Translations under genes and position numbers: made by a program
The notes under the pieces: generated by a model
Databases searched by the model: none
Told to the model about the DNA's origin: nothing
The model's input: only the letters and a program-made list of their open reading frames with translations
Part shown: positions 16,355-40,500 of the stretch, piece by piece
Layout: every line of letters begins with the position of its first letter
Position numbering within the stretch: position 1 is the first letter of the stretch
Assembly: GCA_002269645.1 (NCBI GenBank)
Contig: NIVC01000598.1
Coordinates: 272,010 to 336,009, forward strand
DNA from: Macrostomum lignano
Taxonomy: Eukaryota
Length of the DNA: 64,000 nucleotides
Reading direction: 5' to 3'

Positions 16355-16589
16355 GTTTATAGATCTATTTTTACTAAAAAATTGGTTCTATTTAAAACAA
16401 AGAAAATATATACTTTGGAAAATATGCAAAGCAAAACAAATTAGCTTTCTAAAAAATCCATGCAGATTTAATTTGCAAAAAAGTTCTTATTTCATGCAAG
16501 AAGGCCTTAAACAATACTAACTGAGAAACTGTGTATATCATAACTGCTTTTTGTGACATTTACCTTTAACTACCCCTGTTTTCATGCCA

Positions 16590-17097
16590 ATGGGCGCCTT
16601 CCTAGACAAACCTGTTGTAAACAAAGTGTCCGGCAGCGGCCAGCTGCCCGACGGCATCGCCTACGGCCACTCCACCATGCAGGGCTGGCGCACCAGCCAG
16701 GAGGACGCGCACGCCTGCGCTCCCGGCTTCGACGCCAGCCAGCCAGACCGGCACCTGTTCGCCGTCTTTGATGGCCACGGCGGCGCCGAGGTGGCACTCT
16801 ACCTGGCCAAGCACCTCCCCCAGTACCTGCTGCAGACTGACACCTACCAGAGCGGCGACTTTGAACAAGCGCTCAAGGACGCCTTTCTTGGCCTCGATGC
16901 CAAGCTGCTCGAGCCCGAGGTGGCCGCCGTGCTGAAGAGCCTCGCCAAATCGGCCGAAGACGACTCCGAGTCCGACCAGGACGCCATGGCCGAGGAGGCC
17001 AGCGCCCTGCGCGAGGAGGCTGACATGCCGCTGGACCGCCTGCTGCGCACCATCAACGCGGCCGCAGCGGCCAGGCGTCAGCGTAGGGCAGAGGAAG
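16590..17097 (+). CDS. PPM1G: PPM1G-type protein phosphatase 2C, exon 1
   Basis: MGAFLDKP (myristoylation-type N-terminus), SMQGWR-like TMQGWRTSQEDAH and FAVFDGHGG motifs. Donor GAAG|GTGAG, phase 1. Confidence 0.9.
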
Positions 17098-17134
17098 GTG
17101 AGATTTTTCGGATCCAATCTCTTACCATCATTCA

Positions 17135-17975
17135 CTGACCATTTCTGACCAATTCTAAATATCACCCTCTCTGACCAATTCTGACCATCATCCTCTGACC
17201 AATTCTGACCATCATCCTCTGACCAATTCTGACCATCACCCTCTGACCAATTCTGACCATCATCCTCTGACCAATTCTGACCATCACCCTCTGACCAATT
17301 CTGACCATCACCCTCTGACCAATTCTGACCATCATCCTCTGACCAATTCTGACCATCACCCTCTGACCAATTCTGACCATCATCCTCTGACCAATTCTGA
17401 CCATCATCCTCTGACCAATTCTGACCATCATCCTCTGACCAATTCTGACCATCATCCTCTGACCAATTCTGACCATCATCCTCTGACCAATTCTGACCAT
17501 CATCCTCTGACCAATTCTGACCATCATCCTCTGACCAATTCTGACCATCACCCTCTCTGAGCAATTCTGACCATCATCCTCTGACCAATTCTGACCATCA
17601 CCCTCTGACCAATTCTGACCATCATCCTCTGACCAATTCTGACCATCATCCTCTGACCAATTCTGACCATCATCCTCTGACCAATTCTGACCATCATCCT
17701 CTGACCAATTCTGACCATCATCCTCTGACCAATTCTGACCATCATCCTCTGACCAATTCTGACCATCATCCTCTGACCAATTCTGACCATCATCCTCTGA
17801 CCAATTCTGACCATCATCCTCTGACCAATTCTGACCATCATCCTCTGACCAATTCTGACCATCATCCTCTGACCAATTCTGACCATCATCCTCTGACCAA
17901 TTCTGACCATCATCCTCTGACCAATTCTGACCATCATCCTCTGACCAATTCTGACCATCACCCTCTCTGAGCAAT
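17135..17975. repeat. 24-bp minisatellite filling the PPM1G intron
   Basis: About 35 units of CTGACCAATTCTGACCATCA(T/C)CCT. Confidence 0.95.
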
Positions 17976-18021
17976 TCTTCAGTTATTGCCTACAAACTTA
18001 TTTAATCTTCTCAATCGCCAG

Positions 18022-19124
18022 TTGAGTCAGCTGAAGCCGCTGTCGCTGAAAACGAGAACAACGAGAATACGGAGCGGGAGGCGGCCGCCCACACCGCCGA
18101 CTCTGCCGATAACGGCGTCAATGGTTCTGCCGCCGCCGCCACCGCTGCTGCTGCCACCAACGACGAGGGCGCCGGCAGTTCGTCGAATGCGGAGGCGAAG
18201 GCAGCGGCGGAGGAAGACGCCGAGGCAGAGGAAGACGACAAAGACTACGTGCCCGGCGAAGCGGATGAGGAAGAGGAGGAGGAAGAAGAGGAAGACGAGG
18301 AAAGCAAAGATGAGGGCGATGAAGATGAGGAGGATGGCGAGGAAGGTGAGGAAGGCGACGATGATGAAGAGGAGGACTCCGAATCCGAGGAATCGGACGA
18401 GTCAGAAGAGTACGAGGTCATCATGCCCACCGGTGACGACCCCGGCGTGGACTCCGGGACCACCGCCGTGGTGGCCCTGATGGTTGGCGACCGGCTGTTC
18501 GTGGCCAACGCTGGCGACTCGCGCGCTGTCCTGTCCGATGCCGGCGTCGCGGTCGACATGAGCGACGATCACAAGCCGGAGGATGAGCCAGAGCGGCAGC
18601 GCATCGAGACTGCTGGCGGTCACGTGACTAAGGAGGGCCGCGTGAACGGCGGCCTGAACTTGAGCCGAGCCATCGGAGACCACGCCTACAAGCAGAACTC
18701 CGAGCTGACGGCCGCCAAGCAGATCATCAGCCCGCTGCCCGACGTTCGCTCGGTCACCATCACAGACAGTCACCGGTTTCTTCTGTTGGCCTGCGACGGC
18801 ATCTGGAACTCGATGTCCTCCCAGGAGGCCGTGGACTTCTGCGAGAAGCGCCTGTCCGCCGGGCTTGGCCCCGAGCAGGTGTGCGAGGCCCTGTTCGACC
18901 ACTGCCTGGCCCCCAACACCGAGGACTCGGACGGGACCGGCTGCGACAACATGACGGCCGTGCTGGTCCGCTTCCACGGCGCCGACCAGCAGCAGGCGGC
19001 GGAAGGCGTCTCCCGCAAGCGCCAGCTGCCATCAGCCGGCCAGGAGGCCGAGGCCGCCGCCGGCGCTGAAGCTTCCGCCGCGGCCGCTGGGGAGAGTGAG
19101 AGCAAGAGAGCCAAGGAGGGCTAG
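18022..19124 (+). CDS. PPM1G: PPM1G-type PP2C, exon 2 (acidic insert and catalytic C-half)
   Basis: Acceptor CGCCAG|TT is phase-compatible with exon 1. Contains a poly-E/D acidic domain (PPM1G hallmark), [40 protein letters not shown] and a basic C-terminal tail; stop TAG at 19122-19124. Confidence 0.93.
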
Positions 19125-20469: not shown

Positions 20470-20718
20470 ATCTCAGATACTCGGGTCGGGTAGCCACTGA
20501 GTCCCAGATACTCGGGTCGGGTCGCCACTGAGTCCCAGATACTCGGGTCGGGTCGCCACTGAGTCCCAGATACTCGGGTCGGGTCGCCACTGAGTCCCAG
20601 ATACTCGGGTCGGGTCGCCACTGAGTCCCAGATACTCGGGTCGAGTCGCCACTGAGTCCCAGATACTCGGGTCGGGTCGCCACTGAGTCCCAGATACTCA
20701 GGTCGGGTAGCCACTGAG
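20470..20718. repeat. 31-bp minisatellite
   Basis: About 8 units of GTCGCCACTGAGTCCCAGATACTCGGGTCGG. Confidence 0.95.
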
Positions 20719-20795
20719 TCTCTATAATAAATCTAAGGCTAGAAAATACAGTTGTACTTTTATAGAAGCAATCAGTTAACTTGCACTTTAACTCT

Positions 20796-21143
20796 GTTTC
20801 AGCGGCAGCCGCGCGCTCAGCTCCCGCCCGCCAATGTCCGCCTGCCTGCCGCTTGCCGCCAACGCTCCCCTGCCAGCCGTAGACACCGTCGGCTGGTCGA
20901 CACCGCGCCGCGCCGTCTCAGTGAGCGCCACGCGAGCCCGTGCCGCTGATGGCGGCAGCGCCACGACGCGCCGCGCATTCTCGGCGAACTCTCGTCGATC
21001 TCGGCAACCGTGGCGCCGGCCGCCGCCCCAGCAGCGGCGGCAAGACTCGACTCGCCGCGTCGCCGCCTGGCGCAACTGGCGCGCCAGTTCTGCGCCACGC
21101 GCCATCCTACGCTTGGCGCCACTGGTGCAGAACGCTAGTTCAG
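20796..21143 (+). other. Candidate upstream exon of the EF-hand gene (GC-rich, low complexity)
   Basis: Acceptor TGTTTCAG| follows the 31-bp array; donor CAG|GTGTGG. ORF from ATG 20834 ends in phase 1 and could join an AG at 21557-21558 in frame with the EF-hand exon. No recognisable domain. Confidence 0.3.
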
Positions 21144-21608
21144 GTGTGGAGTCTATGGCCGAACCGCCCCAAAGCACTCTCGATGTCGTACATCTTAGAT
21201 AGTTTAAACTGTTGTCTCATCATTTTTCATTTTTCGCCGCGTCGCCGACGATGCTGGATTTTCGGTCAAGCTGACGTCTATTGAACCTCTGTGCCTCTCT
21301 GTCTCTCCGCCTATAGCTGTGATGCAGTGGAACTTTACATTCATTTCGATTGATTGCTAAATAAATAGTTAATAATCACTTTTTTAGTAATTTTTCAGCT
21401 TTTCTAATCACTATCATCACTCAAATTAGCGGCTTATTCAAAAACTTATTTCGAATAGTTTTTACGGTTGCATTCGTGCATTAGTTTATGGCAAAGTTGT
21501 CAAGCTGTGTTAGAAAAAGAGCTTGAAAAGCTTGCATCTTGCACACAACTGCGCGCAGTCCACCCGATTGCTTGTGCGGCTAACTGGGGCGTCAACTCGT
21601 CTAGAGAC

Positions 21609-21839
21609 ATGCGACGCAGTCTGAACATTCACGCGACCACCAGCCAGAATGTTACCCTGGACTCCCTGATGCTGAAGGTCTTCCAGAGCATGGCCAGGAA
21701 GAAGGACTCCGGCCTCACCTCGGACGACATCATTGTTGCCATGCGCCGCCAGAATCCCTACAAGTTCATCAGCAATGACGTGTACGACCTGATCCATTCC
21801 GCTCTGGGCACCGAGGGAGTCGACGTCACCAGCTTCCGG
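21609..21839 (+). CDS. Divergent calmodulin-like EF-hand protein, coding exon A
   Basis: MRRSLNIH...KVFQSMARKKDSGLTSDDIIVAM...GTEGVDVTSFR with GC3-rich codons; donor CGG|GTGAGA, phase 0. The start codon is uncertain. Confidence 0.7.
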
Positions 21840-22665
21840 GTGAGAGCTGGAAGACTTTAGGGTTGAGGAGGTCCAGATTCGAGTGTTCCAGATATTTGCA
21901 TGTGTGTACTAGTAGAACTCAAACTTTGCGGGTTTGCACTTACTCGCCGCCAGTTGTTGGCAATACGGTTACAAGTACCCGCTACAAGAAATTTGAACGA
22001 AGTTTCCCCGCCTGACCTTATTGTATGTAGTAGCCATAGACCTGTTGGTGATGTTTGAACAAGTTTTAAGCCATGATAGAAAGGTCTCGCAAACACAACG
22101 GACCCAAGGGCACATTTATTTTGGTGCTTGTGCACGAAAATTGGCCGGAGGTTGTCGTACGATTCACACCTACGAGGGCCAAGCTCCAAGGTACACGTCT
22201 GGCAGTTACAAACTTAGGGCCGCTGTACACCCTGGGCCTTTTCATATTGCTTGTTCTGGTACCAGAACCAATTTGTGAAGTATAACTTTTTGTCTCCATA
22301 ACTAGAGGGAGATACGTGCCATAAAGTTTTTATTATTGAATGACAATCGCCAAGAAGAAAGTGAAAAATTGTGCTAAGTGAGGTTGTTAAAGGCAGTCAA
22401 ATATTAACAGAGTTAAATAGTTATACTGCTGTTTTTCTTGGAATTCCGAACCGATTCTGGAATTGGTAATATGAAAAGGCCCCCTGCTGTGTGAGCACTG
22501 TTTATGAGTGCGTGCTTGCGTACGACATTTTCGTATAGTCTGCGAAATGGGCAGAATTGCCTCACTAATATTTAGGGAACGGCATAAAGTGACCACAGCT
22601 CTCGCGCAAATGCTTGTTCACTTCATTTCTATCAACCTCGCGCTCACCGCCGCCGCCCCTCAAAG

Positions 22666-23043
22666 AACTTCGCCGCCCGCATCATCAGCGAGAACGTTGA
22701 GAATTACCTAAACGAGTACATGGAGGCGCTGCAGGTGGGCAACGAGGGCTGCCTCACCCGCTACCGCCTGGAGATGCTCTTCTGCCAGGAGATCGGCGCC
22801 AAGATCAGCCACACCGATGAGGCCTTCGATTCGCTCGAAGATGACTCCGTCATCACCGTGGAGACGCTCTGGCGGCTGCTAGAGGACAGGCGGCGCCTGC
22901 TTAGCTCTTTGGTGAGGCACATCTTCCGGACGGAGATTAATGCAGACTGCGGTGACGACATCCTCGACAGGTTCACCTCGACCACCGCCGACATGCTCAG
23001 CAAGAGGAGAAGCCGCCGGTGCAGCTGCTGCAACCTGCTGTGA
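22666..23043 (+). CDS. Divergent calmodulin-like EF-hand protein, coding exon B ending in RRSRRCSCCNLL (CaaX)
   Basis: CTCAAAG| acceptor in phase 0. NFAARII...ALQVGNEGCLTRYRLEMLF...GAKISHTDEAFDSLEDDSVITVETLWRLL fits EF3/EF4 spacing; stop TGA at 23041-23043. Confidence 0.7.
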   Translation, partial: NFAARIISENVENYLNEYMEALQVGNEGCLTRYRLEMLFCQEIGAKISHTDEAFDSLEDDSVITVETLWRLLEDRRRLLSSLVRHIFRTEINADCGDDILDRFTSTTADMLSKRRSRRCSCCNLL

Positions 23044-23469
23044 CTGAATTAACAATTGATTACTTGTTTAGACTGCTTGATTCGGCTATGCCATTGTTTG
23101 AAATTTAATAGAATTTGGCCGCTATTAAAAACATGCATGTCGTCTTGGTGCTCCTGTTTTGCTAATTTTTTAAATAACGGGAACAACATGGAAATGTATT
23201 GACGTCGCTTAAATTGACAAACTGTAATACTGTAAAATGAAGTGTCAACAAATGCTAGTCCAAGTCCCCATCCTAGTGGTATTAAATTTAAACCCAAGAC
23301 TTGTCCGAGCAAATGTCTATAATTAAAGTTTTATGATGCTCTCGATCGCATCGATGATACATAGAAAAGGTAAATTCTACTTCCCGTCATCCCTAACAAT
23401 TCAGAATTTTTGGAATCGACACGCATAACATAAAAGTATCTTTGAATAATCTCCCACTTTTCAATTTTT

Positions 23470-24370
23470 GTTTTCATCTGTCCCGACATCAGGATTCGGG
23501 ACAGGATCACACTGTCTCCCCATCTCAACCTCAGGATTCGGTACAGGATCACTGTCTCTCCATCTCAACCTCAAGATTCGGTACAGGATCACTGTCTCCC
23601 CATCTCAATCTCAGGATTCGATACAGGATCACCGTCTCCCCATCTCAACCTCAAGATTCTGTACAGGATCACTGTCTCCCCATCTCAACCTCGGGATTCT
23701 GTACAGGATCACTGTCTCCCCATCTCAACCTCGGGATTCTGTACAGGATCACTGTCTCCCCATCTCAAACTCGGGATTCTGTACAGGATCACCGTCTCCC
23801 CATCTCAATCTCAGGATTCGATACAGGATCACTGTCTCCCCATCTCAACCTCAAGATTCTGTACAGGATCACTGTCTCCCCATCTCAACCTCGGGATTCG
23901 GTACAGGATCACTGTCTCCCCATCTCAATCTCAGGATTCGATACAGGATCACTGTCTCCCCATTTCAACCTCAAGATTCGGTACAGGATCACTGTCTCCC
24001 CATCTCAACCTCAAGATTCGGTACAGGATCACCGTCTCCCCATCTCAACCTCAAGATTCGGGACAGGATCACTGTCTCCCCATCTCAACCTCAAGATTCG
24101 GTACAGGATCACTGTCTCCCCATCTCAACCTCGGGATTCGGTACAGGATCACTGTCTCCCCATCTCAACCTCAAGATTCGGTACAGGATCACTGTCTCCC
24201 CATCTCAACCTCAAGATTCTGTACAGGATCACTGTCTCCCCATCTCAACCTCAAGATTCTGTACAGGATCGCTGTCTCCCCATCTCAACCTCAAGATTCG
24301 GTACAGGATCACTGTCTCCCCATCTCAATCTCAGGATTCGGTACAGCATCACTGTCTCCCCATCTCAATC
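23470..24370. repeat. 40-bp minisatellite
   Basis: About 22 units of CAGGATCACTGTCTCCCCATCTCAACCTCAAGATTCGGTA. Confidence 0.95.
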
Positions 24371-24406
24371 TCTACCAGTGCGAGTCCTCCCCTTCCTCTC
24401 ACCCAG

Positions 24407-24457
24407 ATAAAGAAGCTGACACTGGAACAACACCTCAGTGTTAATCAGCGCTGGTAA
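24407..24457 (+). CDS. Candidate alternative terminal exon (IKKLTLEQHLSVNQRW*)
   Basis: Strong acceptor TCCTCCCCTTCCTCTCACCCAG| right after the 40-bp array; in phase with an internal donor TTG|GTGAGG at 22911/22912. Confidence 0.45.
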   Translation: MKKLTLEQHLSVNQRW

Positions 24458-25529: not shown

Positions 25530-25598
25530 TCACACCGCCGCCACAGGTTTGGCGGCCAGACTGCTCTCCCGGTAGGTCAACTCCAGCAGGCTGATTTC
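25530..25598 (-). CDS. PLCB4: PLC-beta exon 21 (terminal)
   Basis: CTGCAG|[22 protein letters not shown]; the hydrophobic C-terminus is comparable to the PLCB4 PATVV PDZ-binding end. Confidence 0.8.
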   Translation of the reverse strand, partial: EISLLELTYRESSLAAKPVAAV

Positions 25599-28500
25599 CT
25601 GCAGGTGATTTCAGAGCGAAAAAGTAGCGAGTTGAAGCTCTGTGCCCCGGCTAGCTTTTCCCGCTATACAAGCTTTTCGCGCCACACTCCATACTTTCTA
25701 CTCATCAGTAGTTAAACTCGCATCCCTAGCATATAGGCCGCTGATTGGCTGGCAATCTCTCTCTACCCCTGCCGCCCTCTCGCCCCCGCGTTATCAGTTG
25801 AAGCTGCCGGCCTCTCTGATTGGCTGGAATCAGCAGACCCACCCTCTTTCCTTGCGCGCCCTCTTGCGGCGCGGGGAATGTTGCCATAAAATATGCTGTT
25901 CATGTTAGTGAGATTTACGATTACAGGGGCCAAACCCCACCACACTGCGTACACTGCCTGATGATAAGAAATTTTAGGGCACGCGTACAAGCGTTCACCC
26001 TTTGAGAGCTAGAAGGCCATCGCCAGAAGAAGCGCCCAACCCATTCCTCTCTGAACGGCAACCAACCTCGTCTAGCGACTTGCCAACCCGGGCCGCCTGC
26101 TCGTCGTGCTCCTTCTTGAGATTTTCCCTGTGGTTGCCCTGCCTGTTGAGCAGCCGCTTCCGCTCTTCGATGAATCGCTTGGTGTTGTTCTCATTGACCT
26201 CGCGAACCCGACGGTCGCGCTCCGCCTTGTTGCGGATGGTCTTGTCGTTCTGCACGGCTTTGCTGGACTCCATGCTGTGCTTGGCCTGCTGCGCCTTCAA
26301 GTCTTTGTTCTCGCGCTCGTGCTGCGCCGTCATCTCCTTCTCCTGGCTGGCCTGGATCTCCAGGGCCACCCTGGTTGCGAGCTCCCGGTGCGCCTCAAGC
26401 TGAGCGCGGCGCAGCTCGTAGACCTCCTTGGAGTGCTGGCGAATCAGGGCCGTCCACTGCTCAGTGTGCTGCGCCACCACGCGGGACATCTGCGGCGTGT
26501 TGGTGGGGGGGGGGGCGTTTGGCAGCATGCCAGGCGCTGTCGAATAACTATAGCCGGAAATGAGGCGCCATCAATCAATCTAACCGGAAATGAGGCGACA
26601 TCAATCAATCTAACCGAAATTGATGCGCCTTCATTCAGTCTAACCGGAAATGAGGCGCCATTAATAAATCTAACTGGAAATGAGGCGCCTTCAACCAATC
26701 TAACCGGAAATGAGGCGCCTTCAATCTAACCGGAAATGAGGCGCCTTCAATCTAACCGGAAATGAGGCGCCTTCAATCTAACCGGAAATGAGGCACCTTC
26801 AACCAATCTAACCGGAAATGATGCGCCTTCAATCAATCTAACCGGAAATGATGCGCCTTTATTCAGTCTAACCGGAAATAAGGCGCCTTCAATCAATCTA
26901 ACCGGAGATGAGGCGCCATCAATCAATCTAACCGGAAATGATGCGCCATCAACCAATCTAACCAGAAATGATGCGCCATCAATCAATCTAAGCGGAAATG
27001 AGGCGCCATCGATCAATCTAACCGGAAATGAGGCGCCATCAATCAATCTAACCGGAAATGAGGCGCCATCAATCAATCTAACCGGAAATGATGCACCATC
27101 AATCAATCTAACCGGAAATGAGGCGCCATCAATCAATCTAACCGGAAATGATGCGCCATCAACCAATCTAACCAGAAATGATGCGCAATCAATCAATCTA
27201 ACCGGAAATGATGCGCCATCAACCAATCTAACCAGAAATGATGCGCCATCAATCAATCTAAGCGGAAATGAGGCGCCATCGATCAATCTAACCGGAAATG
27301 AGGCGCCATCAATCAATCTAACCGGAAATGAGGCGCCATCAATCAATCTAACCGGAAATGATGCGCCATCAATCAGTCAAACACGAGCCAAGCTCACCTC
27401 TTCACCCTGGCTGTCCCGCAGCTCTTTCGTCTGTCCATCCGAGGCGCCGTTCTCTCTGCAAGGTAAAAATTGCGAGAAAAGTGTTTCGAGAGCGGACCAG
27501 CATTGCTCTACGGGAAAATTATCCGCTTACACCTAAAAAGTCAATTTAAAAGCTTAAAGCAAAGCTTAGCTAGGAATGAGTTTATTAGTAGTGAGTAACG
27601 CGAATGAAACTCCAAAATTAAAGACAAATAAAGCAGGAAAGAATCTGGAACCCGACGAGGCGAGTTCCCGCCGTCCGAGGATGGCTAAATTTCTTGAGAA
27701 ATCAGAAATCAGAATTATAAATAAAACAGTCTAATGTGACTACTTAGCAATGTGAGTAGGTAGCGCAGAGCCCGAGCAGCCTAGCAAGCCAATCACACGT
27801 TCAAAACCGGGTTATTAAGAAGCATCCAACTACGATAGTTGGCAAATTTCAATCCGTGACAAAATCTAAGAAATGAAATCGATAAAAATTTCGGAGAGAA
27901 ATATTGGCTAGGATTGGTGAGGCTCAAGCGGCTCAGTGCCAGCCAAAACCAAGACCTGTTGTCTATGGCCAATCCTGGCGGCTCCGGCTGGTCTCCAGTC
28001 GACCGCTGCTGAGGCCGGGAGGCGCAGCAGAGATAAGCGAGCCGGTCACCCCTGCCGCCGCCGCCGTCGCCGCCGCAGGCTGATACGGTTTCTGGGCTAG
28101 AAAGCACAGAAATACAACACAGATAGAAGCTACACAGTGCAACCTGATTGTCTGCCTCTCCTCTACCCTGCCCGGCAGCGCAATGTTTACAACACAATTA
28201 GTCATATTCCATAGGCAGACAACACAGAAACAACAGCGGAGCCAGGAGGCAACTCAGCTACTCACGATCCGCCACCCTTGTTGGTTTTCTTCGCCAACGA
28301 TGCCAGAGCCTTGCCCTGCTGAGCGGCCAGTCGCTCGCATTCGCTTGTGTGCGTCTTCAGCATTGCCTGCTGCTCTTTGTCCTGCCGCTTCAGCACCTGG
28401 TCCAGGTCTTTTGTCTGCGCGTAGGAAAGTGCGAGTGCCAGAAGACGTCACTTTTATTTTTAGAATCAAAACACAGTGAACTATGACGTCACTTCTATTT

Positions 28501-31500
28501 TTAGAATCAAAACACAGTGAGCTGTGATGTCACTTCTATTTTTAGAATCAAAACACAGTGAGCTGTGATGTCACTTTTAGAATCAGAACTCGATGAAAGG
28601 TAAAACAAAAAATACTTGAAATCGATAAAAATTACTCCATAAAACTCACCTGCTTTTTCAGCAGCTTCTGAAATAGCCGATCCTGCCTGACGAGCTCCAG
28701 CGTCACCGGCTCGAGCCGCAGCTCCTGTCTGACTTCTGCGCCACCGCCGCCACCACCACCGCCGCCTCCTCCGCCACCGCCGCCTCCGCCACCGCCACCA
28801 CCGCCACCGCCGCCGCCGCCGGCCTTCGACTGGCTGGGCTTGTCGTCAGCAGAGGCGGCAGCGGCCGCTCCGCCAGCCTTCTTGTTGTTATTGTTGTTGT
28901 TGTTGTTGTTCCTGCCGCGGTTGGCGGTTGTTGGGACGTCGGCGATTTCCGATGTCTCTGCAAGCATTTAAATGACAAAATGAACATGGGGAAAGTAAAA
29001 GGTCAGGAACAAAAAGGCCAGTGCAACATACAGAGTAGATTGACACTGACTGTCTGACTGTCACTCTTACTGTCACTCATGCTGTCACTCTTGCTGTCAC
29101 TCATGCTGTCACTCTTGCTGTCACTCTTACTGTCGCTCATGTCACTCTGGCTGTCACTCTTACTGTCGCTCATGCTGTCCTTCATTCTGTCACTCTCACC
29201 GTCGCTCATACTGTCACTCTTGCTGTCACTCTTACTTTCGCTCATACTGTCGCTCATACTGTCACTCTGGCTGTCACTCTTACTGTCACAGTGCCAATCT
29301 TCAGAAACACTTGAAAAATGCTAAATTTAAGATGATTGAAGAAAAAATCTAAAACGGAAACTCTTAATGCTTTAACTCTTGAAACTGGCTGTGAAGCCTG
29401 GGAAATGCCACCAGCCGCGCTTACCAATGCCCATGTCCTTCATCTGCTGCTCCCGCTTCTCAGCCTTGGACAGAAACGCCCTCGGGTCGCTCAGCGCATC
29501 AACAAAATCTGCCAGGCCCTCGGGCACGTAGGTTTTCAGATCGATGCGGCAGAAGATGGTGGGCAGGGCCAGTGGGAAGTTGCCCTCCGTGCGCAGGCTG
29601 ATGTGCCGGTAGCCGGCGCACAGGCCGTCAAGCGGCAGGATCCGCTGGCCGATCAGCTTGCCAGTCTCCTCAAACACCCCGATGCGGATCACGGCCAGGT
29701 CGGGCAGCACGATCTTGCGGAACACGAACGGCTCCTCGTTGTAGACCGGGTTGAGCCCGTTGCCAGGCACGATGCGAGTTCGGAACTCGCGCCTGATTGT
29801 ATCCGTGGGCAGGCCGTACATGTCCACCTCCACGTAGGTGCCCACTTTCCTGTCCGAGAGGAACTGGCCGGACAGGATCTGGATGGAGCAGCTGGCGGCG
29901 ATCACGCCGTCTACGGGGCTCTCGGAGAACGGGTCGAAATGCCGGTCGCCGCGGCGCATGAAGTCCGGCTTCAGCAGATAGCTGGCGCGGATGGCGGGTG
30001 GCGGCTCAGGCTGAGAGGTGACTGAGGTGACTGTAGCTGAGGCTATGGAAGAGGTGGTTGAGGCTATGGGAGAGGTGGCTGAGGCTATGAGAGAGGTGGC
30101 TGAGGCTATGAGAGAGGTGGCTGAGGCTATGAGAGGTGCCGGAGGCTATGAGAAAGGTAGCTGAGACTATGAGAAAGGTAGTTGAGACTATGAGAAAGGT
30201 GGCTGAGGCTATGAGAAAGGTGGCTAAGACTATGAGAGGTGGCTGAGGCTATGAGAGGTGGCTGAGGCAATGAAAAAGGTAGCTGAGGCTATGGAAGAGG
30301 TGGTTGAGGCTATGGGAGAGGTGGCTGAGGCTATGAGAGAGGTGGCTGAGGCTATGGAAAAGGTGGCTGAGGCTATGAGAGAGGTGGCTGAGGCTATGGA
30401 AGAGGTGACTGAGGCTATGGAAAAGGTGGCTGAGGCTATGAGAGAGGTGGCTAAGACTATGAGAGAGGTGGCCGAGGCTATGGGAGAGGTGGCTAAGACT
30501 ATGAGAGAGGTGGCTGAGGCTATATGGTTTAAGCGATTGAAATTAATGTATCTGAATGTACATCAGAACTACAGGTCAGATAGCTAAGAGTAACTTCGGT
30601 TCCTCAGTAACTTGTCAAAAAAGCTACTGCGTACTGCAAGTAGGCAAGTAAGTGAATTTGGCACGTGTCAAGCAAGCTGTATTTTGAAGTGTTGAAAAAG
30701 AACTGTTAATGCGCATAGTGTCTACTGTAAGTAGGAAGCAGCGAATTAAGCAAAAATGCAAAGCTATTGAGCTGACTGTTGTAGACGGGCTCCGCTGGTT
30801 ACAAATTAATTAATTTATTATTAATGAACTTTTTATACTATTATGGAAATTAAGATAAAAGTGCAACACGGATAAGTGGCCGAGTTAGTCTAGGGCAGAA
30901 ACGTTAATGGAGTTGCGAGGGTTAAAATTCCTAGAAAAATCAATTATTAAAGGCTGTACCAGCGACTGGGGAGACTTTTAGTCCGCAGTGCTTCCTGGAA
31001 AATTTGGTTTGCAAGTCTTCGTGGAACAGAATCAACTGGGGACATTTTCAGAGGGAGCAGACTTTTTGGGATGAGAATCCTTGGATGGAATCTTCAGGGA
31101 CTTTCAGGACTATTAGCTTATGGGAGGAGAAACCCACCAAGATGATTCCCGAAGAATGCCAAGTAAGGCGGGCTGAAAAGCGACTCTCCCCGCGTCGCCC
31201 CGAGGCTCACCCGCAGTTCCCGTTGTACTCGAACTTGCCCTGGTTGAGCTGCATGGCCAGGTCGGGAGTCTGGAAGTTCAGCGCCACCATCTGGCAGCCG
31301 GCGTTCCAGAAGATCTGCGGCATGAAGTTGCTGGAGTCCACGCGGTTGCCGCGCGGGTAAATTCGGCTCATCTGGCGCTTGTTGTAGCTGGGTGCGCGTT
31401 GCCATGGCGACTCGGGTTAAGGAAAATTTTCGGCGTACACTCGCCGGCTTTTATTGTACGCGTGTGCCCGCTCGCACTGTACACTTACCCTCTCTCACGG

Positions 31501-34500
31501 TACACTTACCCTCTCTCACTGTACACTTACCCTCTCTCACTGTACACTTACCCTCTTTCACTGTACAATTACCCTCTCTCACGGTACAATTACCCTCTCT
31601 CACGGTACACTTATCCTCTCTCACTGTACACTTACCCTCTCTCACGGTACACTTACCCTCTCTCACGGTACACTTACCCTCTCTCACGGTACACTTACCC
31701 TCTCTCACTGTACACTTACCCTCTCTCACGGTACACTTACTCCCTTTTTCACTGTACACCTACCCTCTCTCTACACTTACCATCTCTCACTGTACACCTA
31801 CCCTCTCTCACTGTACACTTACCCTCTCTTTGTACACTTATCTCTCTCACAGTACACTTAACCTCTCTTACGGTACACTTACCCTCTCTTACGGTACACT
31901 TACCCTCTCTCACGGTACACTCCCCCTTTCACTGTACATTCCCTCTTTCACTACCATCACATAAATCCGCTCAAAAAGGATACTTGACAAACTCGATGGC
32001 TTCGTTCCTCAGGTAGCCCAGCGCCATAGTCTCGGAGAAGGACGACATGTGATGGTGCACGTTGTCCTCTGCAGGCCAGTTGTGGGATGAGTCTTATAAG
32101 CCACAAGCGGGATTTTACTACTCTACTTTTATTAAATTAATCTGAGAATCTGAGAAGATCTGAGACCTTCGGCCACAGCGAAGCCCTGGAATTTGACCGG
32201 CTGGGCGTAGTTGACCATGGCCGACAGCACCGGGTGGATGGTGGTGGTGGCGCCCGTGTACTGGTAGTGCTCCAGCATCGCCTGCTCCTCCTCCGCGCTC
32301 AGCACCTCCTGCGGGATGGTGCGGGGATCTGAGCTGAGCAAACTGTCCCCAATGCAGTCGGTCCCAATCTGGGAAAATATCCCTAATGCAGTCGGTCCCA
32401 ATATGGGAAAATATTCCCAATGCAATTGGTCCCAATCTGGGAAAATATCCCCAATGCAATCGGTCCCAATATGGGAAAATATCCCCAATGCAATCGGGCC
32501 CAAACCTAACCGGCATTTAGGAAATATATCCCTAAATCCCACATGACCCGCCATACCTTCGCTTTGGCCGCTTCATCCTCCTCGGCAGATGCGGCGGCGG
32601 CAGCGCCAGCCCCCAGGGTCGCCTGAGAGGCCGCCCTGACCACCGGGGCCACCGGCGGAACCACCGGCTTTTCGCCGCTGTCGCCGCCCTCCGGATGAGG
32701 GTCCGTGTCCACAATGGGCGGGGTCGGATCCAGGTCGTTCAACGGCCCGGCCTCGCCGTCCAATATCACCTGGGGATCCTCGGCCACCTCAACCTCGTCT
32801 GGCGGGGTCTGGCCCTTCATGAATAGCTCGAGCTGGTCTGCAGAGGGTCACAGGGTCCGCGTTTGATTAGGAGTGCTATAATCTCCCAGTCCGGACAACC
32901 AATCCCAACCAGGCCCCTCCATGCAACCTTCTTGGATTTCTTGCATCCAGGCAAATGCATTCCATCCAGACTCCTCTAACCGATCTAGGCACCTTCATCC
33001 CATCTAGGCACATTCATCCCATCTAGGCACCTTCATCCCATCTAGGCACCTTCATCCCATCTAGGCACCTTCATCCCATCTAGGCACCTTCATCCCATCT
33101 AGGCACCTTCATCCCATCTAGGCACCTTCATCCCATCTAGGCACCTTCATCCCATCTAGGCACCTCCAACCTATCCAGGCACCTTCATCCCATCCAGACA
33201 CCTTCATCCCATCCAGGCACATTCATCCCATCAAGACACCATCCCATCCAGGCACCTCACTCCCGTCCAGACACCTTCATCCCATCTAGGTACCTTTATC
33301 CCATCTAGGTACCTTTATCCCATCAAGGCAACTCTATCCCATCAAGATACCTTCATCCCATCCAGGCACCTCCATCCCATCTGGACACCTTCATTCCATC
33401 AAGGCACCTCCAACCCATCCAGGCACCTTCATCCCATCCAGGCACCTTCATCCCATCCAGGCACCTTCATCCCATCCAGGCACCTCCATCCCATCTGGAC
33501 ACCTTTATCCCATCAAGGCAACTCTATCCCATCAAGATACCTTCATCCCATCCAGGCACCTCCATCCCATATGGACACCTTCATTCCATCAAGGCACCTC
33601 CAACCCATCCAGGCACCTTCATCCCATCCAGGCACCTCCATCCCATCTGAACACCTTTATCCCATCAAGGCACCTCCATCCCATCAAGATACCTTCATCC
33701 CATCCAGGCCCCTCCATCCCATCAAAGCACCTTCATCCCATCAAAGCACCTTCATCCCACCCAGGCACCTCCATCCCATCTGGACACCTTCATTCCATCA
33801 AGGTACCTCCAACCCATCCAGGCACCTTCATCCCATCAAAGCACCTTCATCCCATCCAGGCACCTCCATCCCATTATGGCACCTTCATCCCATTCGACCA
33901 GTCCACCCAGTCGCCCCGAGTTCGGAGACCCAATCAGCCCAACTCTACAACTCGTACTCTTCAGGCACTCCGAGGCACGCCCGTCTGACAATGAGAAATC
34001 CAAGGCAGGTGTACTCTAGTGAGGCAGCATTCGTGTGCGCGTGCGCTCAGGGATCAGCGGGTGGGGTGGCTGGCCTGGCCTAATTGCCTCTTCGCTGGTC
34101 GCGGGTCGACCGTCGCTAGAGGTCACAGCCGCTGCAAACCAAAAAGCAAGCAAATCACCAAGGCGAGGCTGGGTATGGGCCGTTATTCTAAAATCTGCCA
34201 ATATACCATTTTCCCCAAAGCAGGATCATTGTGCATCAGTCCGACTCTGCGCTACTCACGCTTCTCAACCTCCGGCTTGAGCCGCTTGTTCTTGATGAGG
34301 ATTTTATACTTGAGCTTCTCGGGCGGCGGCAGGGGAACTCCGGGCTCAAGCTGGCAAAGAGGATGAAGGGGTGAAGGGATTTGAGATAAATCTCTGACAG
34401 GCTGACATAAAACTGGCAAAAGAGGAAGGCCAGCAAATTGCAACGGCTTACTGGGTACTTGTCAATCGGCTTATTGAGCAGGTAGTCGCCGAAAATATCC

Positions 34501-37500
34501 TCGCAATACTTGGCCAGCTTGTACTGCTGCAGCTTGCTGGGGGGGGGGCGATGGGTGAGTCATGAATAACAACTGACAGAAGCGACAGCCGTATTCCTCA
34601 GCTCTCCCTCTCACCTGCAATGGTTCTCAAATGACAGAATCACAGGCCAGGCCGAGGTGACAAAAGCTGTGTCGCGAATGGCGTTGACAACATCCTGCAA
34701 TGCGGAGCGCCGGCTCGCCTAAATTCACTAATTATTGCTTACAGTTATACTAATCTATATAACTAAATGATTAATTCACTAACGCAGCTTCCCCTGACTC
34801 CTAAGACTGGGTTATTCCGAAGGTAGTTACGCCCCCCCTGAAGGAGATGCCAGCGGCCCAGGCTCGATTCCAAGTGCAGTCACATTTATTTGAGGCTAAA
34901 TTGGAATCTCGGCTTGGCTCTGCTCGTGCAATTAACGTATTTGAGGACCAACCCCAAGGCACATTGAAGTTTACATGCCTAACGATAAATAAAGTTTGGG
35001 CCGCTGTACACTCCTGTGTGAGTGAGTGCCTGTCGCTTAAAATGCGCCAGGGTGCACCCAGCCTCCTGTCTCTAACCCAGGGATAGTGGTGGCCTCCTGA
35101 AGAACCAAATGGTAGTGGCGGTCCAATAAAGTGTTCAGCACCGGAAAAGTCACCAGATGTTGACCAACTGAGAGCCAGCAAAAACCCGGATGCCTCACCT
35201 TGAACAGGATGTCCGTGCACATGGCCTTGCCGTGGGTGATGATGGGCTCCTGGTCGTTGTCCTTGCCATCCCAGCAGTCCAGCTCGATGCACCGGCAGCC
35301 GGCGAGCAGCACCTGACGGTACATCTCCACCGAGCTCTTGCCGCCGAACTGCCTACCGCTCAGGTAGGTGTTGTGCGAACTGTTAATGTAATAGTGCGAC
35401 AGCGGCTGGTCCATGTCGTGGTGCAGCTCCAGCTTGTCCAGGAACACGGGGGCATTGTCGTCCGACATCAGGTAGCGATAGAAGCAGTCGATGCTGATCT
35501 TGCCTTGAAGAGATTAAGAATTTGCTGCTCTAATTTGTTCAGAAGCGGCTAAAAGTACAAAATCCGCTTATCACATCCGGGATGCAGAACCTGCATTGAA
35601 TCATTTTAATCCCCTGCTCAAGCGGATATTCCAATCGTTATCTGTTAGCCACCTTTAAAGACCACTCAATAACGAAATTTTTTAATAAACGAAAATGCAT
35701 TGGAAAGATGAACAGTTTTCATCCCACTCAATAGATGAGTGTTTACCTTTGTTCACCCACTCCATCCACAATATCTTGTAACAGAAATATCAGAACTCCC
35801 TTGGCTCAAAAACATTAAAAACGATTCTTGCACCGATGGCACTCTCGGACACGCCCAGCCCGCGGCTCCGGCCCCGCCCAAATCTTGCCCGGCCGCCTCA
35901 ATTATTTGACGATTTGGCGATTCGAGCTGCTCAGCGCGCGGGTCTCCGGGCGCGGAGGAAAGGAGGGGAGGCCCCTTTGAGAGTCCGAACGCGCACTCAG
36001 CTGGACAGCCCCGCCCAGATTTTTCGGCGAACTATGCGCTCCGCCAGACTGGCCAGCAAATAGCGAGGAAGAAGAGGGGAGCTCAAAGTTGTTACGTTCG
36101 GCTAATGGCATTTATTGCCATAGTTCCATACACAGCCACGGGACCGGGCATGTCCTAGCCAGGCCAGCTGGCTAACCACAGCAGGGCTGGGAGGGGGCAT
36201 TGCCTAGCCAGGCCAGCTGGCTAACCACAGCAGGGCTGGGAGGGGGCATTGCCTAGCCAGGCCAGCTGGCTAACCACAGCAGGGCTGGGAGGGGGCATTG
36301 CCTAGCCAGGCCAGCTGGCTAACCACAGCAGGGCTGGGAGGGGGCATTGCCTAGCCAGGCCAGCTGGCTAACCACAGCAGGGCTGGGAGGGGGCATTGCC
36401 TAGCCAGGCCAGCTGGCTAACCTCAGCAGGGCTGGGAGGGGGCATTGCCTAGCCAGGCCAGCTGCATGGCTAACCACAGCAGTGCTGGGAGGGGGCATTG
36501 CCTAGCCAGGCCAGCTGGCTAACCACAGCAGGGCTGGGAGGGGGCATGTCCTAGCCAGGCCAGCTGGCTAACCACCTGCTGCGCCCTCGTTGTTTGAGCA
36601 CCTTGAGCAGCATAGTAACTCACGATTCTCCTGGTTCTCCTTATTTGGCTCGTAGCACTTAAGAATGTTCTCAATGGTCAGCTTGTTGGCAAAGGGGTAC
36701 AGAATCTCGTTGAGCCGGGGATCTCGCTGGGTGACGTTGAGAAACTCCATCATCTTGTCCTGAGAGACGACGCTGCCACCAGCGCCGCCGCACAGCTCGT
36801 TGAAGAGGTCTTCGATGTCCTGGCGCGGGCAGATGCGGTGGTACAGCTCGTAGAACTTCTCGAAGGTGAAGTCCGCCTTTACGATTTCGTCGTTCTGTTA
36901 GGGAGAAAAACAGGCAAAGCAAAGTCTGAGTTCGCTTGCTCGTCGACAAAGCCCTACCGATTGCTCAGCTGTAAATCTTTCATTGAATATGCTGAGACCT
37001 TCAAGTCGTCCTGCGATCTACCACTTCACAATGAAAACACACCTAGTCCCAAAGCTGCATGAACTTTTGGTACACATCTCCGCTCAGATCTAATCCCCAC
37101 TCTTCCCAGCTCTCCTCTTGCATTGTCTCTCCTCTCTTGCATTGTCTCTCCTCTCTTGCATTGTCTCTCCTCTCTTGTATTGTCTCTCCTCTCTTGCATT
37201 GTCTCTCCTCTCTTGTATTGTCTCTCCTCTCTTGCATTGTCTCTCCTCTCTTGTATTGTCTCTCCTCTCTTGCATTGTCTCTCCTCTCTTGCATTGTCTC
37301 TCCTCTCTTGTATTGTCTCTCCTCTCTTGTATTGTCTCTCCTCTCTTGCATTGTCTCTCCTCTCTTGTATTGTCTCTCCTCTCTTGCATTGTCTCTCCTC
37401 TCTTGTATTGTCTCTCCTCTCTTGCATTGTCTCTCCTCTCTTGCATTGTCTCTCCTCTCTTGCATTGTCTCTCCTCTCTTGTATTGTCTCTCCTCTCTTG

Positions 37501-40500
37501 TATTGTCTCTCCTCTCTTGCATTGTCTCTCCTCTCTTGCATTGTCTCTCCTCTCTTGCATTGTCTCTCCTCTCTTGTATTGTCTCTCCTCTCTTGCATTG
37601 TCTCTCCTCTCTTGTATTGTCTCTCCTCTCTTGTATTGTCTCTCCTCTCTTGCATTGTCTCTCCTCTCTTGCATTGTCTCTCCTCTCTTGCATTGTCTCT
37701 CCTCTCTTGCATTGTCTCTCCTCTCTTGTATTGTCTCTCCTCTCTTGCATTGTTTCTCCTCTCTTGCATTGTCTCTCCTCTCTTGCATTGTCTCTCCTCT
37801 CTTGTATTGTCTCTCCTCTCTTGTATTGTCTCTCCTCTCTTGCATTGTCTCTCCTCTCTTGCATTGTCTCTCCTCTCTTGCATTGTCTCTCCTCTCTTGT
37901 ATTGTCTCTCCTCTCTTGTATTGTCTCTCCTCTCTTGCATTGTTTCTCCTCTCTTGCATTGTCTCTCCTCTCTTGCATTGTCTCTCCTCTCTTGTATTTT
38001 CTCTCCTCTCTGTTTTATTCTCTCCCCCACCTTGGCAGACGGCAGACCGAGATCCTTCAGCGTCTGAAAGATGATTTTTTCCGTCTTGCCGGAGGCGAAG
38101 GTCTTGCTGATTGCGCGCACCGGGATGCAGTTGTTAGCGTTCACTGAGACGCACAGCTTCATCCAGCTGCGGGTGCGGCAGGTGGGTCAGGCTTGGATTG
38201 TGTTGGTCGGCTTTGGATCGGGTGGGTTGGGCTTGGATCGGGTGGGTTGGGCTTGGATCGGGTGGGTTGGGCTTGGATCGGGTGGGTTGGGCTTGGATCG
38301 GGTGGGTTGGGCTTGGATCGGGTGGGTTGGGCTTGGATCGGGTGGGTTGGGCTTGGATCGGGTGGGTTGGGCTTGGATCGGGTGGGTTGGGCTTGGATCG
38401 GGTGGGTTGGACTTGAATCGGGTGGGTTGGGCTTGGATCGGGTGTACAGCTGCCCTGACTTTCTAATCGTCAGACATGTACACTCTCTGTGCATCGGGTG
38501 CTGCCAACCCTTATGGTTTTGAATCGCACTACACCCCGGCCAATTTTCGTGCGCAAGCCCCAAATCAATGTGCTTGCGCCCGGAATGGAACCAGGGGTCG
38601 CGGCGCGAGAGTCGGGCGCGTTTACCCCCGCTCTGCCCCCCCCCCCCCTGGGCTTGAGTGAGTGAGTGGGAAATTATTCACAAGTAAAAATTACTGATAT
38701 AACAAACGATGGGAACCGTGCGCACAAGACTGTACGAGGCTGCAGAGTTGCATTATGTACCAACACACAGGCCCATATTTACCAGCCGTGACGAAACCCC
38801 ATGCAACCATTTTCCTTTCCACTGCTGCTCTTCTTCAAATCGCTCTGGCTCGGCCTCTCAACTCTGAGACGGTAAAACAAGCGCTGAGGCAGAGAGGATC
38901 CCTCATTCCGGGAATCCCCGACCCGCGGCAGACATTAGCAAACATACTCGGGGAGAACTAAGGGGAGCTGCTGGTAAGGACCTGCACTTTAACCACGGAA
39001 TAGGACAGGTAAGGTGCTGGCTTGAAGAAAACTTCAACTGGACAAGAGAAGGAAAAGAGCAAAACGAAAAAGGAACTCCGACTCTCACTGTTTGCGCAGC
39101 TGCGTCATTGGACACACATTGCTGGCCTTTGTGTTGTGAGTCAGCGGTCTCAGGTCCTGGATCCAAGCCTGCGGGTTCAGGAAGCGATCGCTTTTGTATG
39201 CAATTGTGCCTGTGTGAGCAGATCAACTGAGGGACAGGGATGCTGCAGCCTCAAGTTTAACTGAGGGACAGGGATGCTGCAGCCTCAAGCACAACTGAGG
39301 GACAGGGATGCTGCAGCCTCAAGCACAACTGAGGGACAGGGATGCTGCAGCCTCAAGCACAACTGAGGGACAGGGATGCTGCAGCCTCAAGCACAACTGA
39401 GGGACAGGGATGCTGCAGCCTCAAGCACAACCGAGGGACAGGGATGCTGCAGCCTCAAGCACAACTGAGGGACAGGGATGCTGCAGCCTCAAGCACAACT
39501 GAGGGACAGGGATGCTGCAGCCTCAAGCACAACTGAGGGACAGGGATGCTGCAGCCTCAAGCACAACTGAGGGACAGGGATGCTGCAGCCTCAAGCACAA
39601 CTGAGGGACAGGGATGCTGCAGCCTCAAGCACAACTGAGGGACAGGGATGCTGTAGCCTCAAGCACAACTGAGGGACAGGGATGCTGCAGCCTCAAGCAC
39701 AACCGAGGGACAGGGATGCTGTAGCCTCAAGCACAACTGAGGGACAGGGATGCTGCAGCCTCAAGCACAACTGAGGGACAGGGATGCTGCAGCCTCAAGC
39801 ACAACTGAGGGACAGGGATGCTGCAGCCTCAAGCACAACTGAGGGACAGGGATGCTGTAGCCTCAAGCACAACTGAGGGACAGGGATGCTGCAGCCTCAA
39901 GCACAACTGAGGGACAGGGATGCTGCAGCCTCAAGCACAACTGAGGGACAGGGATGCTGCAGCCTCAAGCACAACCGAGGGACAGGGATGCTGTAGCCTC
40001 AAGCACAACTGAGGGACAGGGATGCTGCAGCCTCAAGCACAACTGAGGGACAGGGATGCTGCAGCCTCAAGCACAACTGAGGGACAGGGATGCTGCAGCC
40101 TCAAGCACAACCGAGGGACAGGGATGCTGTAGCCTCAAGCACAACTGAGGGACAGGGATGCTGCAGCCTCAAGCACAACTGAGGGACAGGGATGCTGCAG
40201 CCTCAAGCACAACTGAGGGACAGGGATGCTGCAGCCTCAAGCACAACTGAGGGACACGGATGCTGCAGCCTCAAGCACAACCGAGGGACAGGGATGCTGT
40301 AGCCTCAAGCACAACTGAGGGACAGGGATGCTGCAGCCTCAAGCACAACTGAGGGACAGGGATGCTGCAGCCTCAAGCACAACCGAGGGACAGGGATGCT
40401 GCAGCCTCAAGCACAACTGAGGGACAGGGATGCTGTAGCCTCAAGCACAACCGAGGGACAGGGATGCTGCAGCCTCAAGCACAACTGAGGGACAGGGATG

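Follow-up and report, generated by a model that had tools for sequence, protein, structure and literature searches.

A two-exon gene of Macrostomum lignano encodes an orphan helical protein with a predicted geranylgeranyl, palmitoyl and polybasic membrane anchor

In the flatworm Macrostomum lignano, a small two-exon gene is located on the forward strand at positions 21,609 to 23,043 of a 64,000-nucleotide stretch of DNA (contig NIVC01000598.1 of assembly GCA_002269645.1, positions 272,010 to 336,009), the whole of which is referred to below as the window. The spliced product comprises 202 amino acids, with the C-terminal end SKRRSRRCSCCNLL, and is identical to the deposited protein P0003 (PAA78137.1/PAA80068.1), listed in GenBank as 'hypothetical protein BOX15_Mlig028515g3/g4', Macrostomum lignano. 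The gene is already known in this form as a deposited hypothetical protein, and the gene called on the same contig spans 1435 nt, exactly as in the window; over the 5 kb compared, the window and this contig are 100% identical. Here, the product is interpreted, with a probability of about 0.58, as a lineage-restricted, acidic, helical protein that would be held at the plasma membrane, on its inner face, through a geranylgeranyl, palmitoyl and polybasic tail of the paralemmin or Ras type. The initial annotation of this stretch had given the gene structure, both splice sites and a product of about 202 residues exactly as they stand in the deposited record. It had also proposed a calmodulin-like body with degenerate EF hands, which is not supported by the comparisons described below.

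The coding parts, the intron and the elements of the tail are listed in Table 1. At the donor, CGG is followed by GTGAGA after position 21839, and the acceptor lies at the end of ...CCCCTCAAAG directly before 22666, the 3' end of the 826-nt intron reading ...CCGCCCCTCAAAG. No in-frame ATG is located upstream of 21609 within the open frame, and reading through the donor leads to a stop after 84 amino acids. The guanine plus cytosine (GC) content is 0.59 in the coding sequence and 0.45 in the intron. At third codon positions (GC3) it reaches 0.86 in frame, compared with 0.52 and 0.40 in the two other frames, and this phasing argues for a translated gene and against either a chance open reading frame or a gene born de novo very recently. 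A matching GC3 of 0.81-0.82 was obtained for the conserved PP2C gene located 2.5 kb upstream. Furthermore, the GenBank annotation of the assembly relied only on transcriptome assemblies, both genome-guided and de novo, and on transcript ends defined experimentally (PMC5730564). The junction between 21839 and 22666 is therefore supported indirectly by RNA, because the identical deposited product comes from this transcript-derived annotation.

Table 1. Coordinates of the gene and of the sequence elements discussed, as positions in the window
Feature	Positions	Strand	Details
Exon 1, coding part	21609..21839	+	residues 1-77; ATG at 21609; 231 nt; product equals deposited M. lignano P0003
Intron	21840..22665	+	826 nt; GTGAGA...AAAG; phase 0
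Exon 2, coding part	22666..23043	+	378 nt; residues 78-202 plus TGA stop (23041-23043)
In-frame GT..AG stretch of exon 2, optional	22735..22935	+	201 nt; residues 101-167; removed in the 135-aa UniProt entry P0002
Basic patch K190 R191 R192 S193 R194 R195	23002..23019	+	paralogue P0001 has R194H
C196-S197-C198 upstream of the CaaX box	23020..23028	+	candidate S-palmitoylation cysteines, inferred from sequence and paralemmin analogy
CaaX box C199-N-L-L	23029..23040	+	CaaL (geranylgeranyltransferase-I) type, by sequence and the rule of PMC12197051
Candidate polyadenylation signal ATTAAA	23124..23129	+	81 nt past the stop; motif match only

The gene is present in at least four full-length copies, representing two sequence variants, on three contigs; a fifth copy (P0004), which is partial, is located on a further contig. 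P0001 (g2/g5) is one residue apart from the product, namely R194H. Across approximately 3.8 kb, with the intron and flanks included, the copies are 97.6-99% identical. The exons of the two copy types differ by three substitutions, of which those at 22710 and 22818 are synonymous and the third, G>A at 23015, produces R194H; these are too few for constraint to be measured. In the intron, one or two substitutions and an indel of 13-14 nt separate the copy types, and the open reading frame is unbroken in all copies. A search of the window by tblastn returned only the two exons described above and no second copy of the product. The gene lies within a module of approximately 3.8 kb, with an array of 31-bp repeats on one side (20474-20720) and an array of 40-bp repeats on the other (23489-24372). 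On NIVC01000704.1 this module occurs twice, in inverted orientation and approximately 7.5 kb apart, around a 265-aa gene call, with arms 97.7-99% identical to the window. The UniProt entry P0002, in which the N-terminal 100 residues are joined to the tail, may be either a genuine alternative isoform or an artefact of gene prediction in an older assembly.

Outside M. lignano, no homologue was found among 5.8 billion clusters in word-indexed searches at E<=0.01 and E<=10, nor among 1.84 billion representatives in an exhaustive phmmer scan that used no word index. The term orphan denotes here the lack of a detectable homologue outside the genus, and not necessarily a species-specific gene, as other Macrostomum proteins appear to be absent from the collections searched. 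The gene is regarded as genuine and expressed, and as confined to Macrostomum or to related flatworms that are poorly sampled.

The C-terminus of the product is KRRSRRCSCCNLL, and its last 14 residues are S-K-R-R-S-R-R-C-S-C-C-N-L-L. Five basic residues and two extra cysteines precede CNLL, and residues 189-202 carry a net charge of +5, compared with -9 for residues 1-188. The box has Cys at position -4, Leu at both a2 and X, and the stop codon immediately after it, as is typical of a geranylgeranyltransferase-I (GGTase-I) CaaX box. Geranylgeranylation is favoured where X is Leu, Ile or Phe, and prenylation alone is usually not enough, a polybasic domain or an acylated cysteine upstream being needed as well (PMC12197051). 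Both kinds of second signal lie directly before the box, KRRSRR as the basic patch and C196 and C198 as candidate acylation sites. The probability of such an ending was estimated with a chance model in which the protein ends in CaaL, two or more of the three residues preceding this box are Cys, and five or more of the seven preceding these are Lys or Arg. The joint probability is 2e-10 to 5e-9 per protein, corresponding under independence to <=4e-4 expected in 72,846 genes. Judged by its sequence, the anchor motif is real and its composition is not accidental, the lipidation itself being predicted. The tail fits geranylgeranylation by GGTase-I combined with a second membrane signal, and a lipid anchor is probable. 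The initial annotation had described the same elements, a basic patch, upstream cysteines and a geranylgeranylation-type CNLL, and this description holds as a prediction under the rule cited above and the precedent of paralemmin. All four distinct M. lignano sequences keep the CaaX box, each of them as CSCCNLL, a conservation that is uninformative at the approximately 99% identity of the paralogues.

In the remainder of the protein, the maximum Kyte-Doolittle value over a 19-residue window is 0.55, and no transmembrane segment or signal peptide is indicated. Single-sequence AlphaFold2 prediction gave a predicted local distance difference test (pLDDT) score of 42.0 for the full length and 50.7 for residues 14-170. 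In both of these low-confidence models, helices are located at residues 17-30, 38-47, 56-66, 73-100, 109-132, 142-167 and 170-187. Because hydropathy remains this low and the same helices recur in two AlphaFold2 runs, the body is modelled as soluble, acidic and predominantly alpha-helical. The fold is left unassigned by this analysis, and the product is not filed as an EF-hand protein. Among Pfam and PDB entries no match to the Ras (GTPase) family was obtained; the Paralemmin family of Pfam did not match the body, in which its conserved cassettes were not found.

A different view of the body is that it represents a highly diverged, Ca-insensitive four-EF-hand domain of the calmodulin/centrin kind, in which case the product would be a prenylated adaptor and the animal counterpart of the plant protein CaM53. 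This is close to what the initial annotation had proposed, namely four helix-loop-helix units spaced as in calmodulin, the loops of which lack the acidic Ca ligands. The last point is borne out, since the product has no match to PS00018, the 12-residue Ca-binding loop with ligands at positions 1, 3, 5 and 12, and the best partial matches, with 8 of the 11 constrained positions, are no better than those of 2000 shuffled sequences (P 0.92-1.0). The spacing is confirmed weakly: the first five helical elements run roughly parallel to the helices of calmodulin, with the 28-residue helix at 73-100 taken as the central one. Against this, the models have the low scores given above, and their helix 109-132 is unbroken, so that the third and fourth units, which would form the C-lobe, are not separated. 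Foldseek searches with either model gave matches at the level of noise (best E 0.75 and 1.1), none of them to an EF-hand protein, and no EF-hand fold was predicted in these low-confidence models. At the sequence level, no EF-hand family was matched in Pfam even at E<=10, and no EF-hand protein in the PDB sequence search. A profile of the calmodulin family was also constructed from eight four-EF-hand proteins and was validated by its recovery of 771 PDB chains with calmodulin at their head. With this profile, hhalign returned a probability of 0.35% (E 0.17), and hmmsearch --max gave 2.7 bits for the product versus 1.8 bits for the reversed sequence. The profile of an EF-hand pair (lobe) gave -0.5 bits (P 0.19), with a higher score for the reversed sequence, and the profile of a single hand gave no score for the product. 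Moreover, Smith-Waterman comparison of the N-terminal with the C-terminal half indicated that an internal repeat is absent (z = -0.37, P 0.65), compared with z = 29.8 for the calmodulin control. What speaks for the EF-hand domain, in addition to the spacing, is a collinear register chosen by both hhalign and hmmsearch, in which residues 23-124 are placed along EF1-EF3 and AMR--RQNP stands opposite VMRSLGQNP. The product scores above 98.8% of shuffles, and its native segment order outscores 3000 of 3000 order permutations; with reversal of segments added, the figure is 99.7%, and in block shuffles P is 0.014-0.02. Of the EF-hand tests, only the segment-order permutation stood clear of the noise level. 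A P value of approximately 0.01 is not independent evidence, because the hypothesis arose from viewing the same sequence. The resemblance is collinear and at the level of noise, the EF-hand idea is not supported by the sequence comparisons, and we consider a diverged EF-hand adaptor unlikely. A more specific form, in which a body of calmodulin fold has diverged past sequence recognition, has lost Ca binding and would be tethered permanently to the plasma membrane by the geranylgeranyl, palmitoyl and polybasic signals, appears distinctly improbable. If true, animals would gain their first family of small, prenylated calmodulin-like proteins, one that arose independently of plant CaM53. The body has also been related to cullins, as the UniRef names of P0002 and P0003 include the automatic UniProt name 'CULLIN_2 domain-containing protein', presumably from a PROSITE profile match, and the product might thus be a small cullin-related fragment. 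That name could not be reproduced and is taken as a borderline automatic match. Neither Cullin nor Cullin_Nedd8 was matched in Pfam at E<=10, no cullin occurs among PDB matches at E<=10 even though PDB holds many cullins, and the near-identical P0001 is named 'Uncharacterized protein'. With human CUL1, the sequence of which was verified at 1737 bits to 1u6g_A, BLASTP gave a best E of 0.64 and phmmer --max gave -2.3 bits (P 0.19 against shuffles). A cullin identity is effectively refuted at the sequence level and is scarcely credible.

The tail itself can be read differently, as a segment that does not work as a lipid anchor in vivo. KRRSRR would then be a nuclear localisation signal or a patch for nucleic acids or acidic lipids, the cysteines would be unmodified or metal-binding, and the protein would be nuclear or cytosolic. 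Unprenylated CaM53 gathers in the nucleus via its basic domain (PMC12197051), so tails of this kind can be dual signals. In addition, only M. lignano sequences with the motif were found, and the R194H variant falls within the patch. On the other side, a box of this kind (Cys exactly at -4, Leu as both a2 and X) that has two more cysteines no further than three residues away would be very unlikely to arise by chance, and the tail matches the proven architecture of the paralemmin anchor (PMC2148134). A tail without lipid is considered rather unlikely. A final alternative, that of an annotation artefact or a non-functional open reading frame such as a transcribed, untranslated duplicate, would fit the orphan status of the product and the location of the gene in a duplicated module bounded by minisatellites. 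The strongly phased GC3, equal to that of the conserved neighbouring gene, the frame that is intact in all copies with two synonymous changes and one non-synonymous change, and the transcript-derived gene model all stand against it, and it is regarded as very unlikely. Several points weigh against the membrane-anchored helical protein preferred here. The acceptor is AAG, which is rarer than YAG. The a1 residue of the CaaX box is Asn and not aliphatic, although a1 is generally the tolerant position of the box. The single amino-acid difference between copies, R194H, sits in the basic patch and hints at weak constraint there. According to the authors of PrePS, functional CaaX motifs are separated from accidental or out-of-context ones by conservation among homologues (PMC1847700), and the only sequences available for this comparison are the nearly identical paralogues. 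The basic patch could equally serve as a nuclear localisation signal, and the lipid modifications themselves are predicted from the sequence.

For the anchored helical protein, the lipidation steps, localisation and charge switch that we infer would proceed as follows. Cytosolic GGTase-I would attach a C20 prenyl group to C199 of CNLL, after which the -NLL tripeptide would be cut off and the new C-terminus methylated at the endoplasmic reticulum. C196 and/or C198 may then be S-palmitoylated. Both lipids, prenyl and acyl, and the KRRSRR patch would jointly retain the helical body at the plasma membrane, on its cytosolic side. S197 lies in an RRxS context, and phosphorylation of this residue and of S193 could provide release through a charge switch.

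The closest precedent for such a tail is paralemmin, an animal non-GTPase with a basic cluster, two cysteines and a CaaX box, which is both prenylated and palmitoylated and requires the motif for its association with the plasma membrane (PMC2148134). The same three elements are present in the tail of the product, and paralemmin is likewise a hydrophilic, acidic protein otherwise (PMC2148134). In contrast, paralemmin ends in Met, is predicted to be farnesylated, has a mass of approximately 42 kDa and contains conserved cassettes, and no similarity was found between its body and that of the product. The hypervariable anchors of Ras and Rho proteins also combine a CaaX box with a second signal, consisting of a basic patch and/or palmitoylatable cysteines. 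Polybasic-CaaX tails are found in K-Ras4B and Rac1 and Cys-CaaX tails in H-Ras and RhoB, CaaL boxes being typical of the Rho and Rap substrates of GGTase-I. The product differs from these in that it contains no GTPase domain and its body is modelled as all-helical. Petunia CaM53 and rice CaM61 are small proteins which, like the product, end in a basic domain and a CaaL box. Their bona fide Ca-binding calmodulin domain distinguishes them from the product, which matches no EF-hand model and has extra candidate palmitoylation cysteines. Prenylation switches such a plant protein between plasma membrane and nucleus (PMC12197051; PMC3886798). In animals, USP32 pairs an EF-hand domain with a prenylation motif that is conserved (PMC1847700), and is therefore an animal precedent for the combination of an EF-hand with a C-terminal prenylation motif, although it is a large ubiquitin hydrolase with a size and architecture unrelated to those of the product. 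The initial annotation had known of no comparable animal family, which was overstated, given the anchor of paralemmin and the pairing of domain and motif in USP32.

If the anchor is real, a lineage-restricted non-GTPase would join the peripheral membrane proteins with prenyl, palmitoyl and polybasic signals, in a flatworm model with working transgenesis, and M. lignano reporters could be directed to the plasma membrane with the short tail as a native tag. A claim to an animal prenylated calmodulin is not supported. The body, which has no detectable relatives and at the same time displays strong codon bias, illustrates a gene that is either old or evolving fast, the fold of which is unreadable until more macrostomid sequences become available. 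No long-standing question is opened or settled by the gene.

Chance-level matches to several other proteins were also returned from Pfam, NCBIfam and PDB, including a Kae1-type tRNA threonylcarbamoyltransferase (E 0.014), ParM (0.18) and the ABC-F protein Uup (0.002-1.1), and were rejected. In the last case, residues 16-98 (21654-21839 and 22666-22728) weakly and repeatedly resemble the N-terminal part of the bacterial ABC-F ATPase Uup, with E 0.002 in NCBIfam (16 bits compared with a cut-off of 900) and E 1.1 for PDB 9nlj_U. This resemblance is most likely due to chance.

With regard to the genomic neighbourhood, the PP2C gene mentioned above is located upstream on the same strand (16584-19124, +) and encodes a PPM1G-like phosphatase, annotated with 537 aa, that matches Pfam PP2C at E 4e-58. 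A minisatellite of 24 bp x 34 (17144-17966) is located inside what must be an intron of this gene. In the supplement of PMC5816591 the phosphatase gene is listed as Mlig028515.g13, a transcriptional-unit identifier that it has in common with the studied gene, and the shared identifier Mlig028515 points to possible co-transcription and trans-splicing of the two. Regarding expression records, 'Mlig028515' was not found in main texts, and the supplements searched gave only the phosphatase gene g13. Just upstream of the studied gene, a GC-rich stretch (20788-21284) contains overlapping Ala/Arg/Gly-rich open reading frames of 100-130 aa on both strands, and probably represents a non-coding, promoter-proximal GC island and not genes. 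Downstream, a convergent gene at approximately 25530-33050 (-) is annotated as encoding 1231 aa, for which no Pfam entry is recorded, and a match to the C2 domain (E 5.6e-06) was found in one of its exon-sized open reading frames (29372-29959). No tRNA gene was found in the window (1-64000). Minisatellites crowd the same interval, with 27 TRF rows that correspond to approximately 22 distinct arrays. Their repeat period ranges from 8 to 119 bp, in most cases 17-49 bp, and the copy number reaches 72. Examples, in addition to the array within the phosphatase gene and the two arrays that flank the module, are located at 37115-38011 and 39224-40744. The long apparent open reading frames at 23442-24457 are the 40-bp array read in frame.

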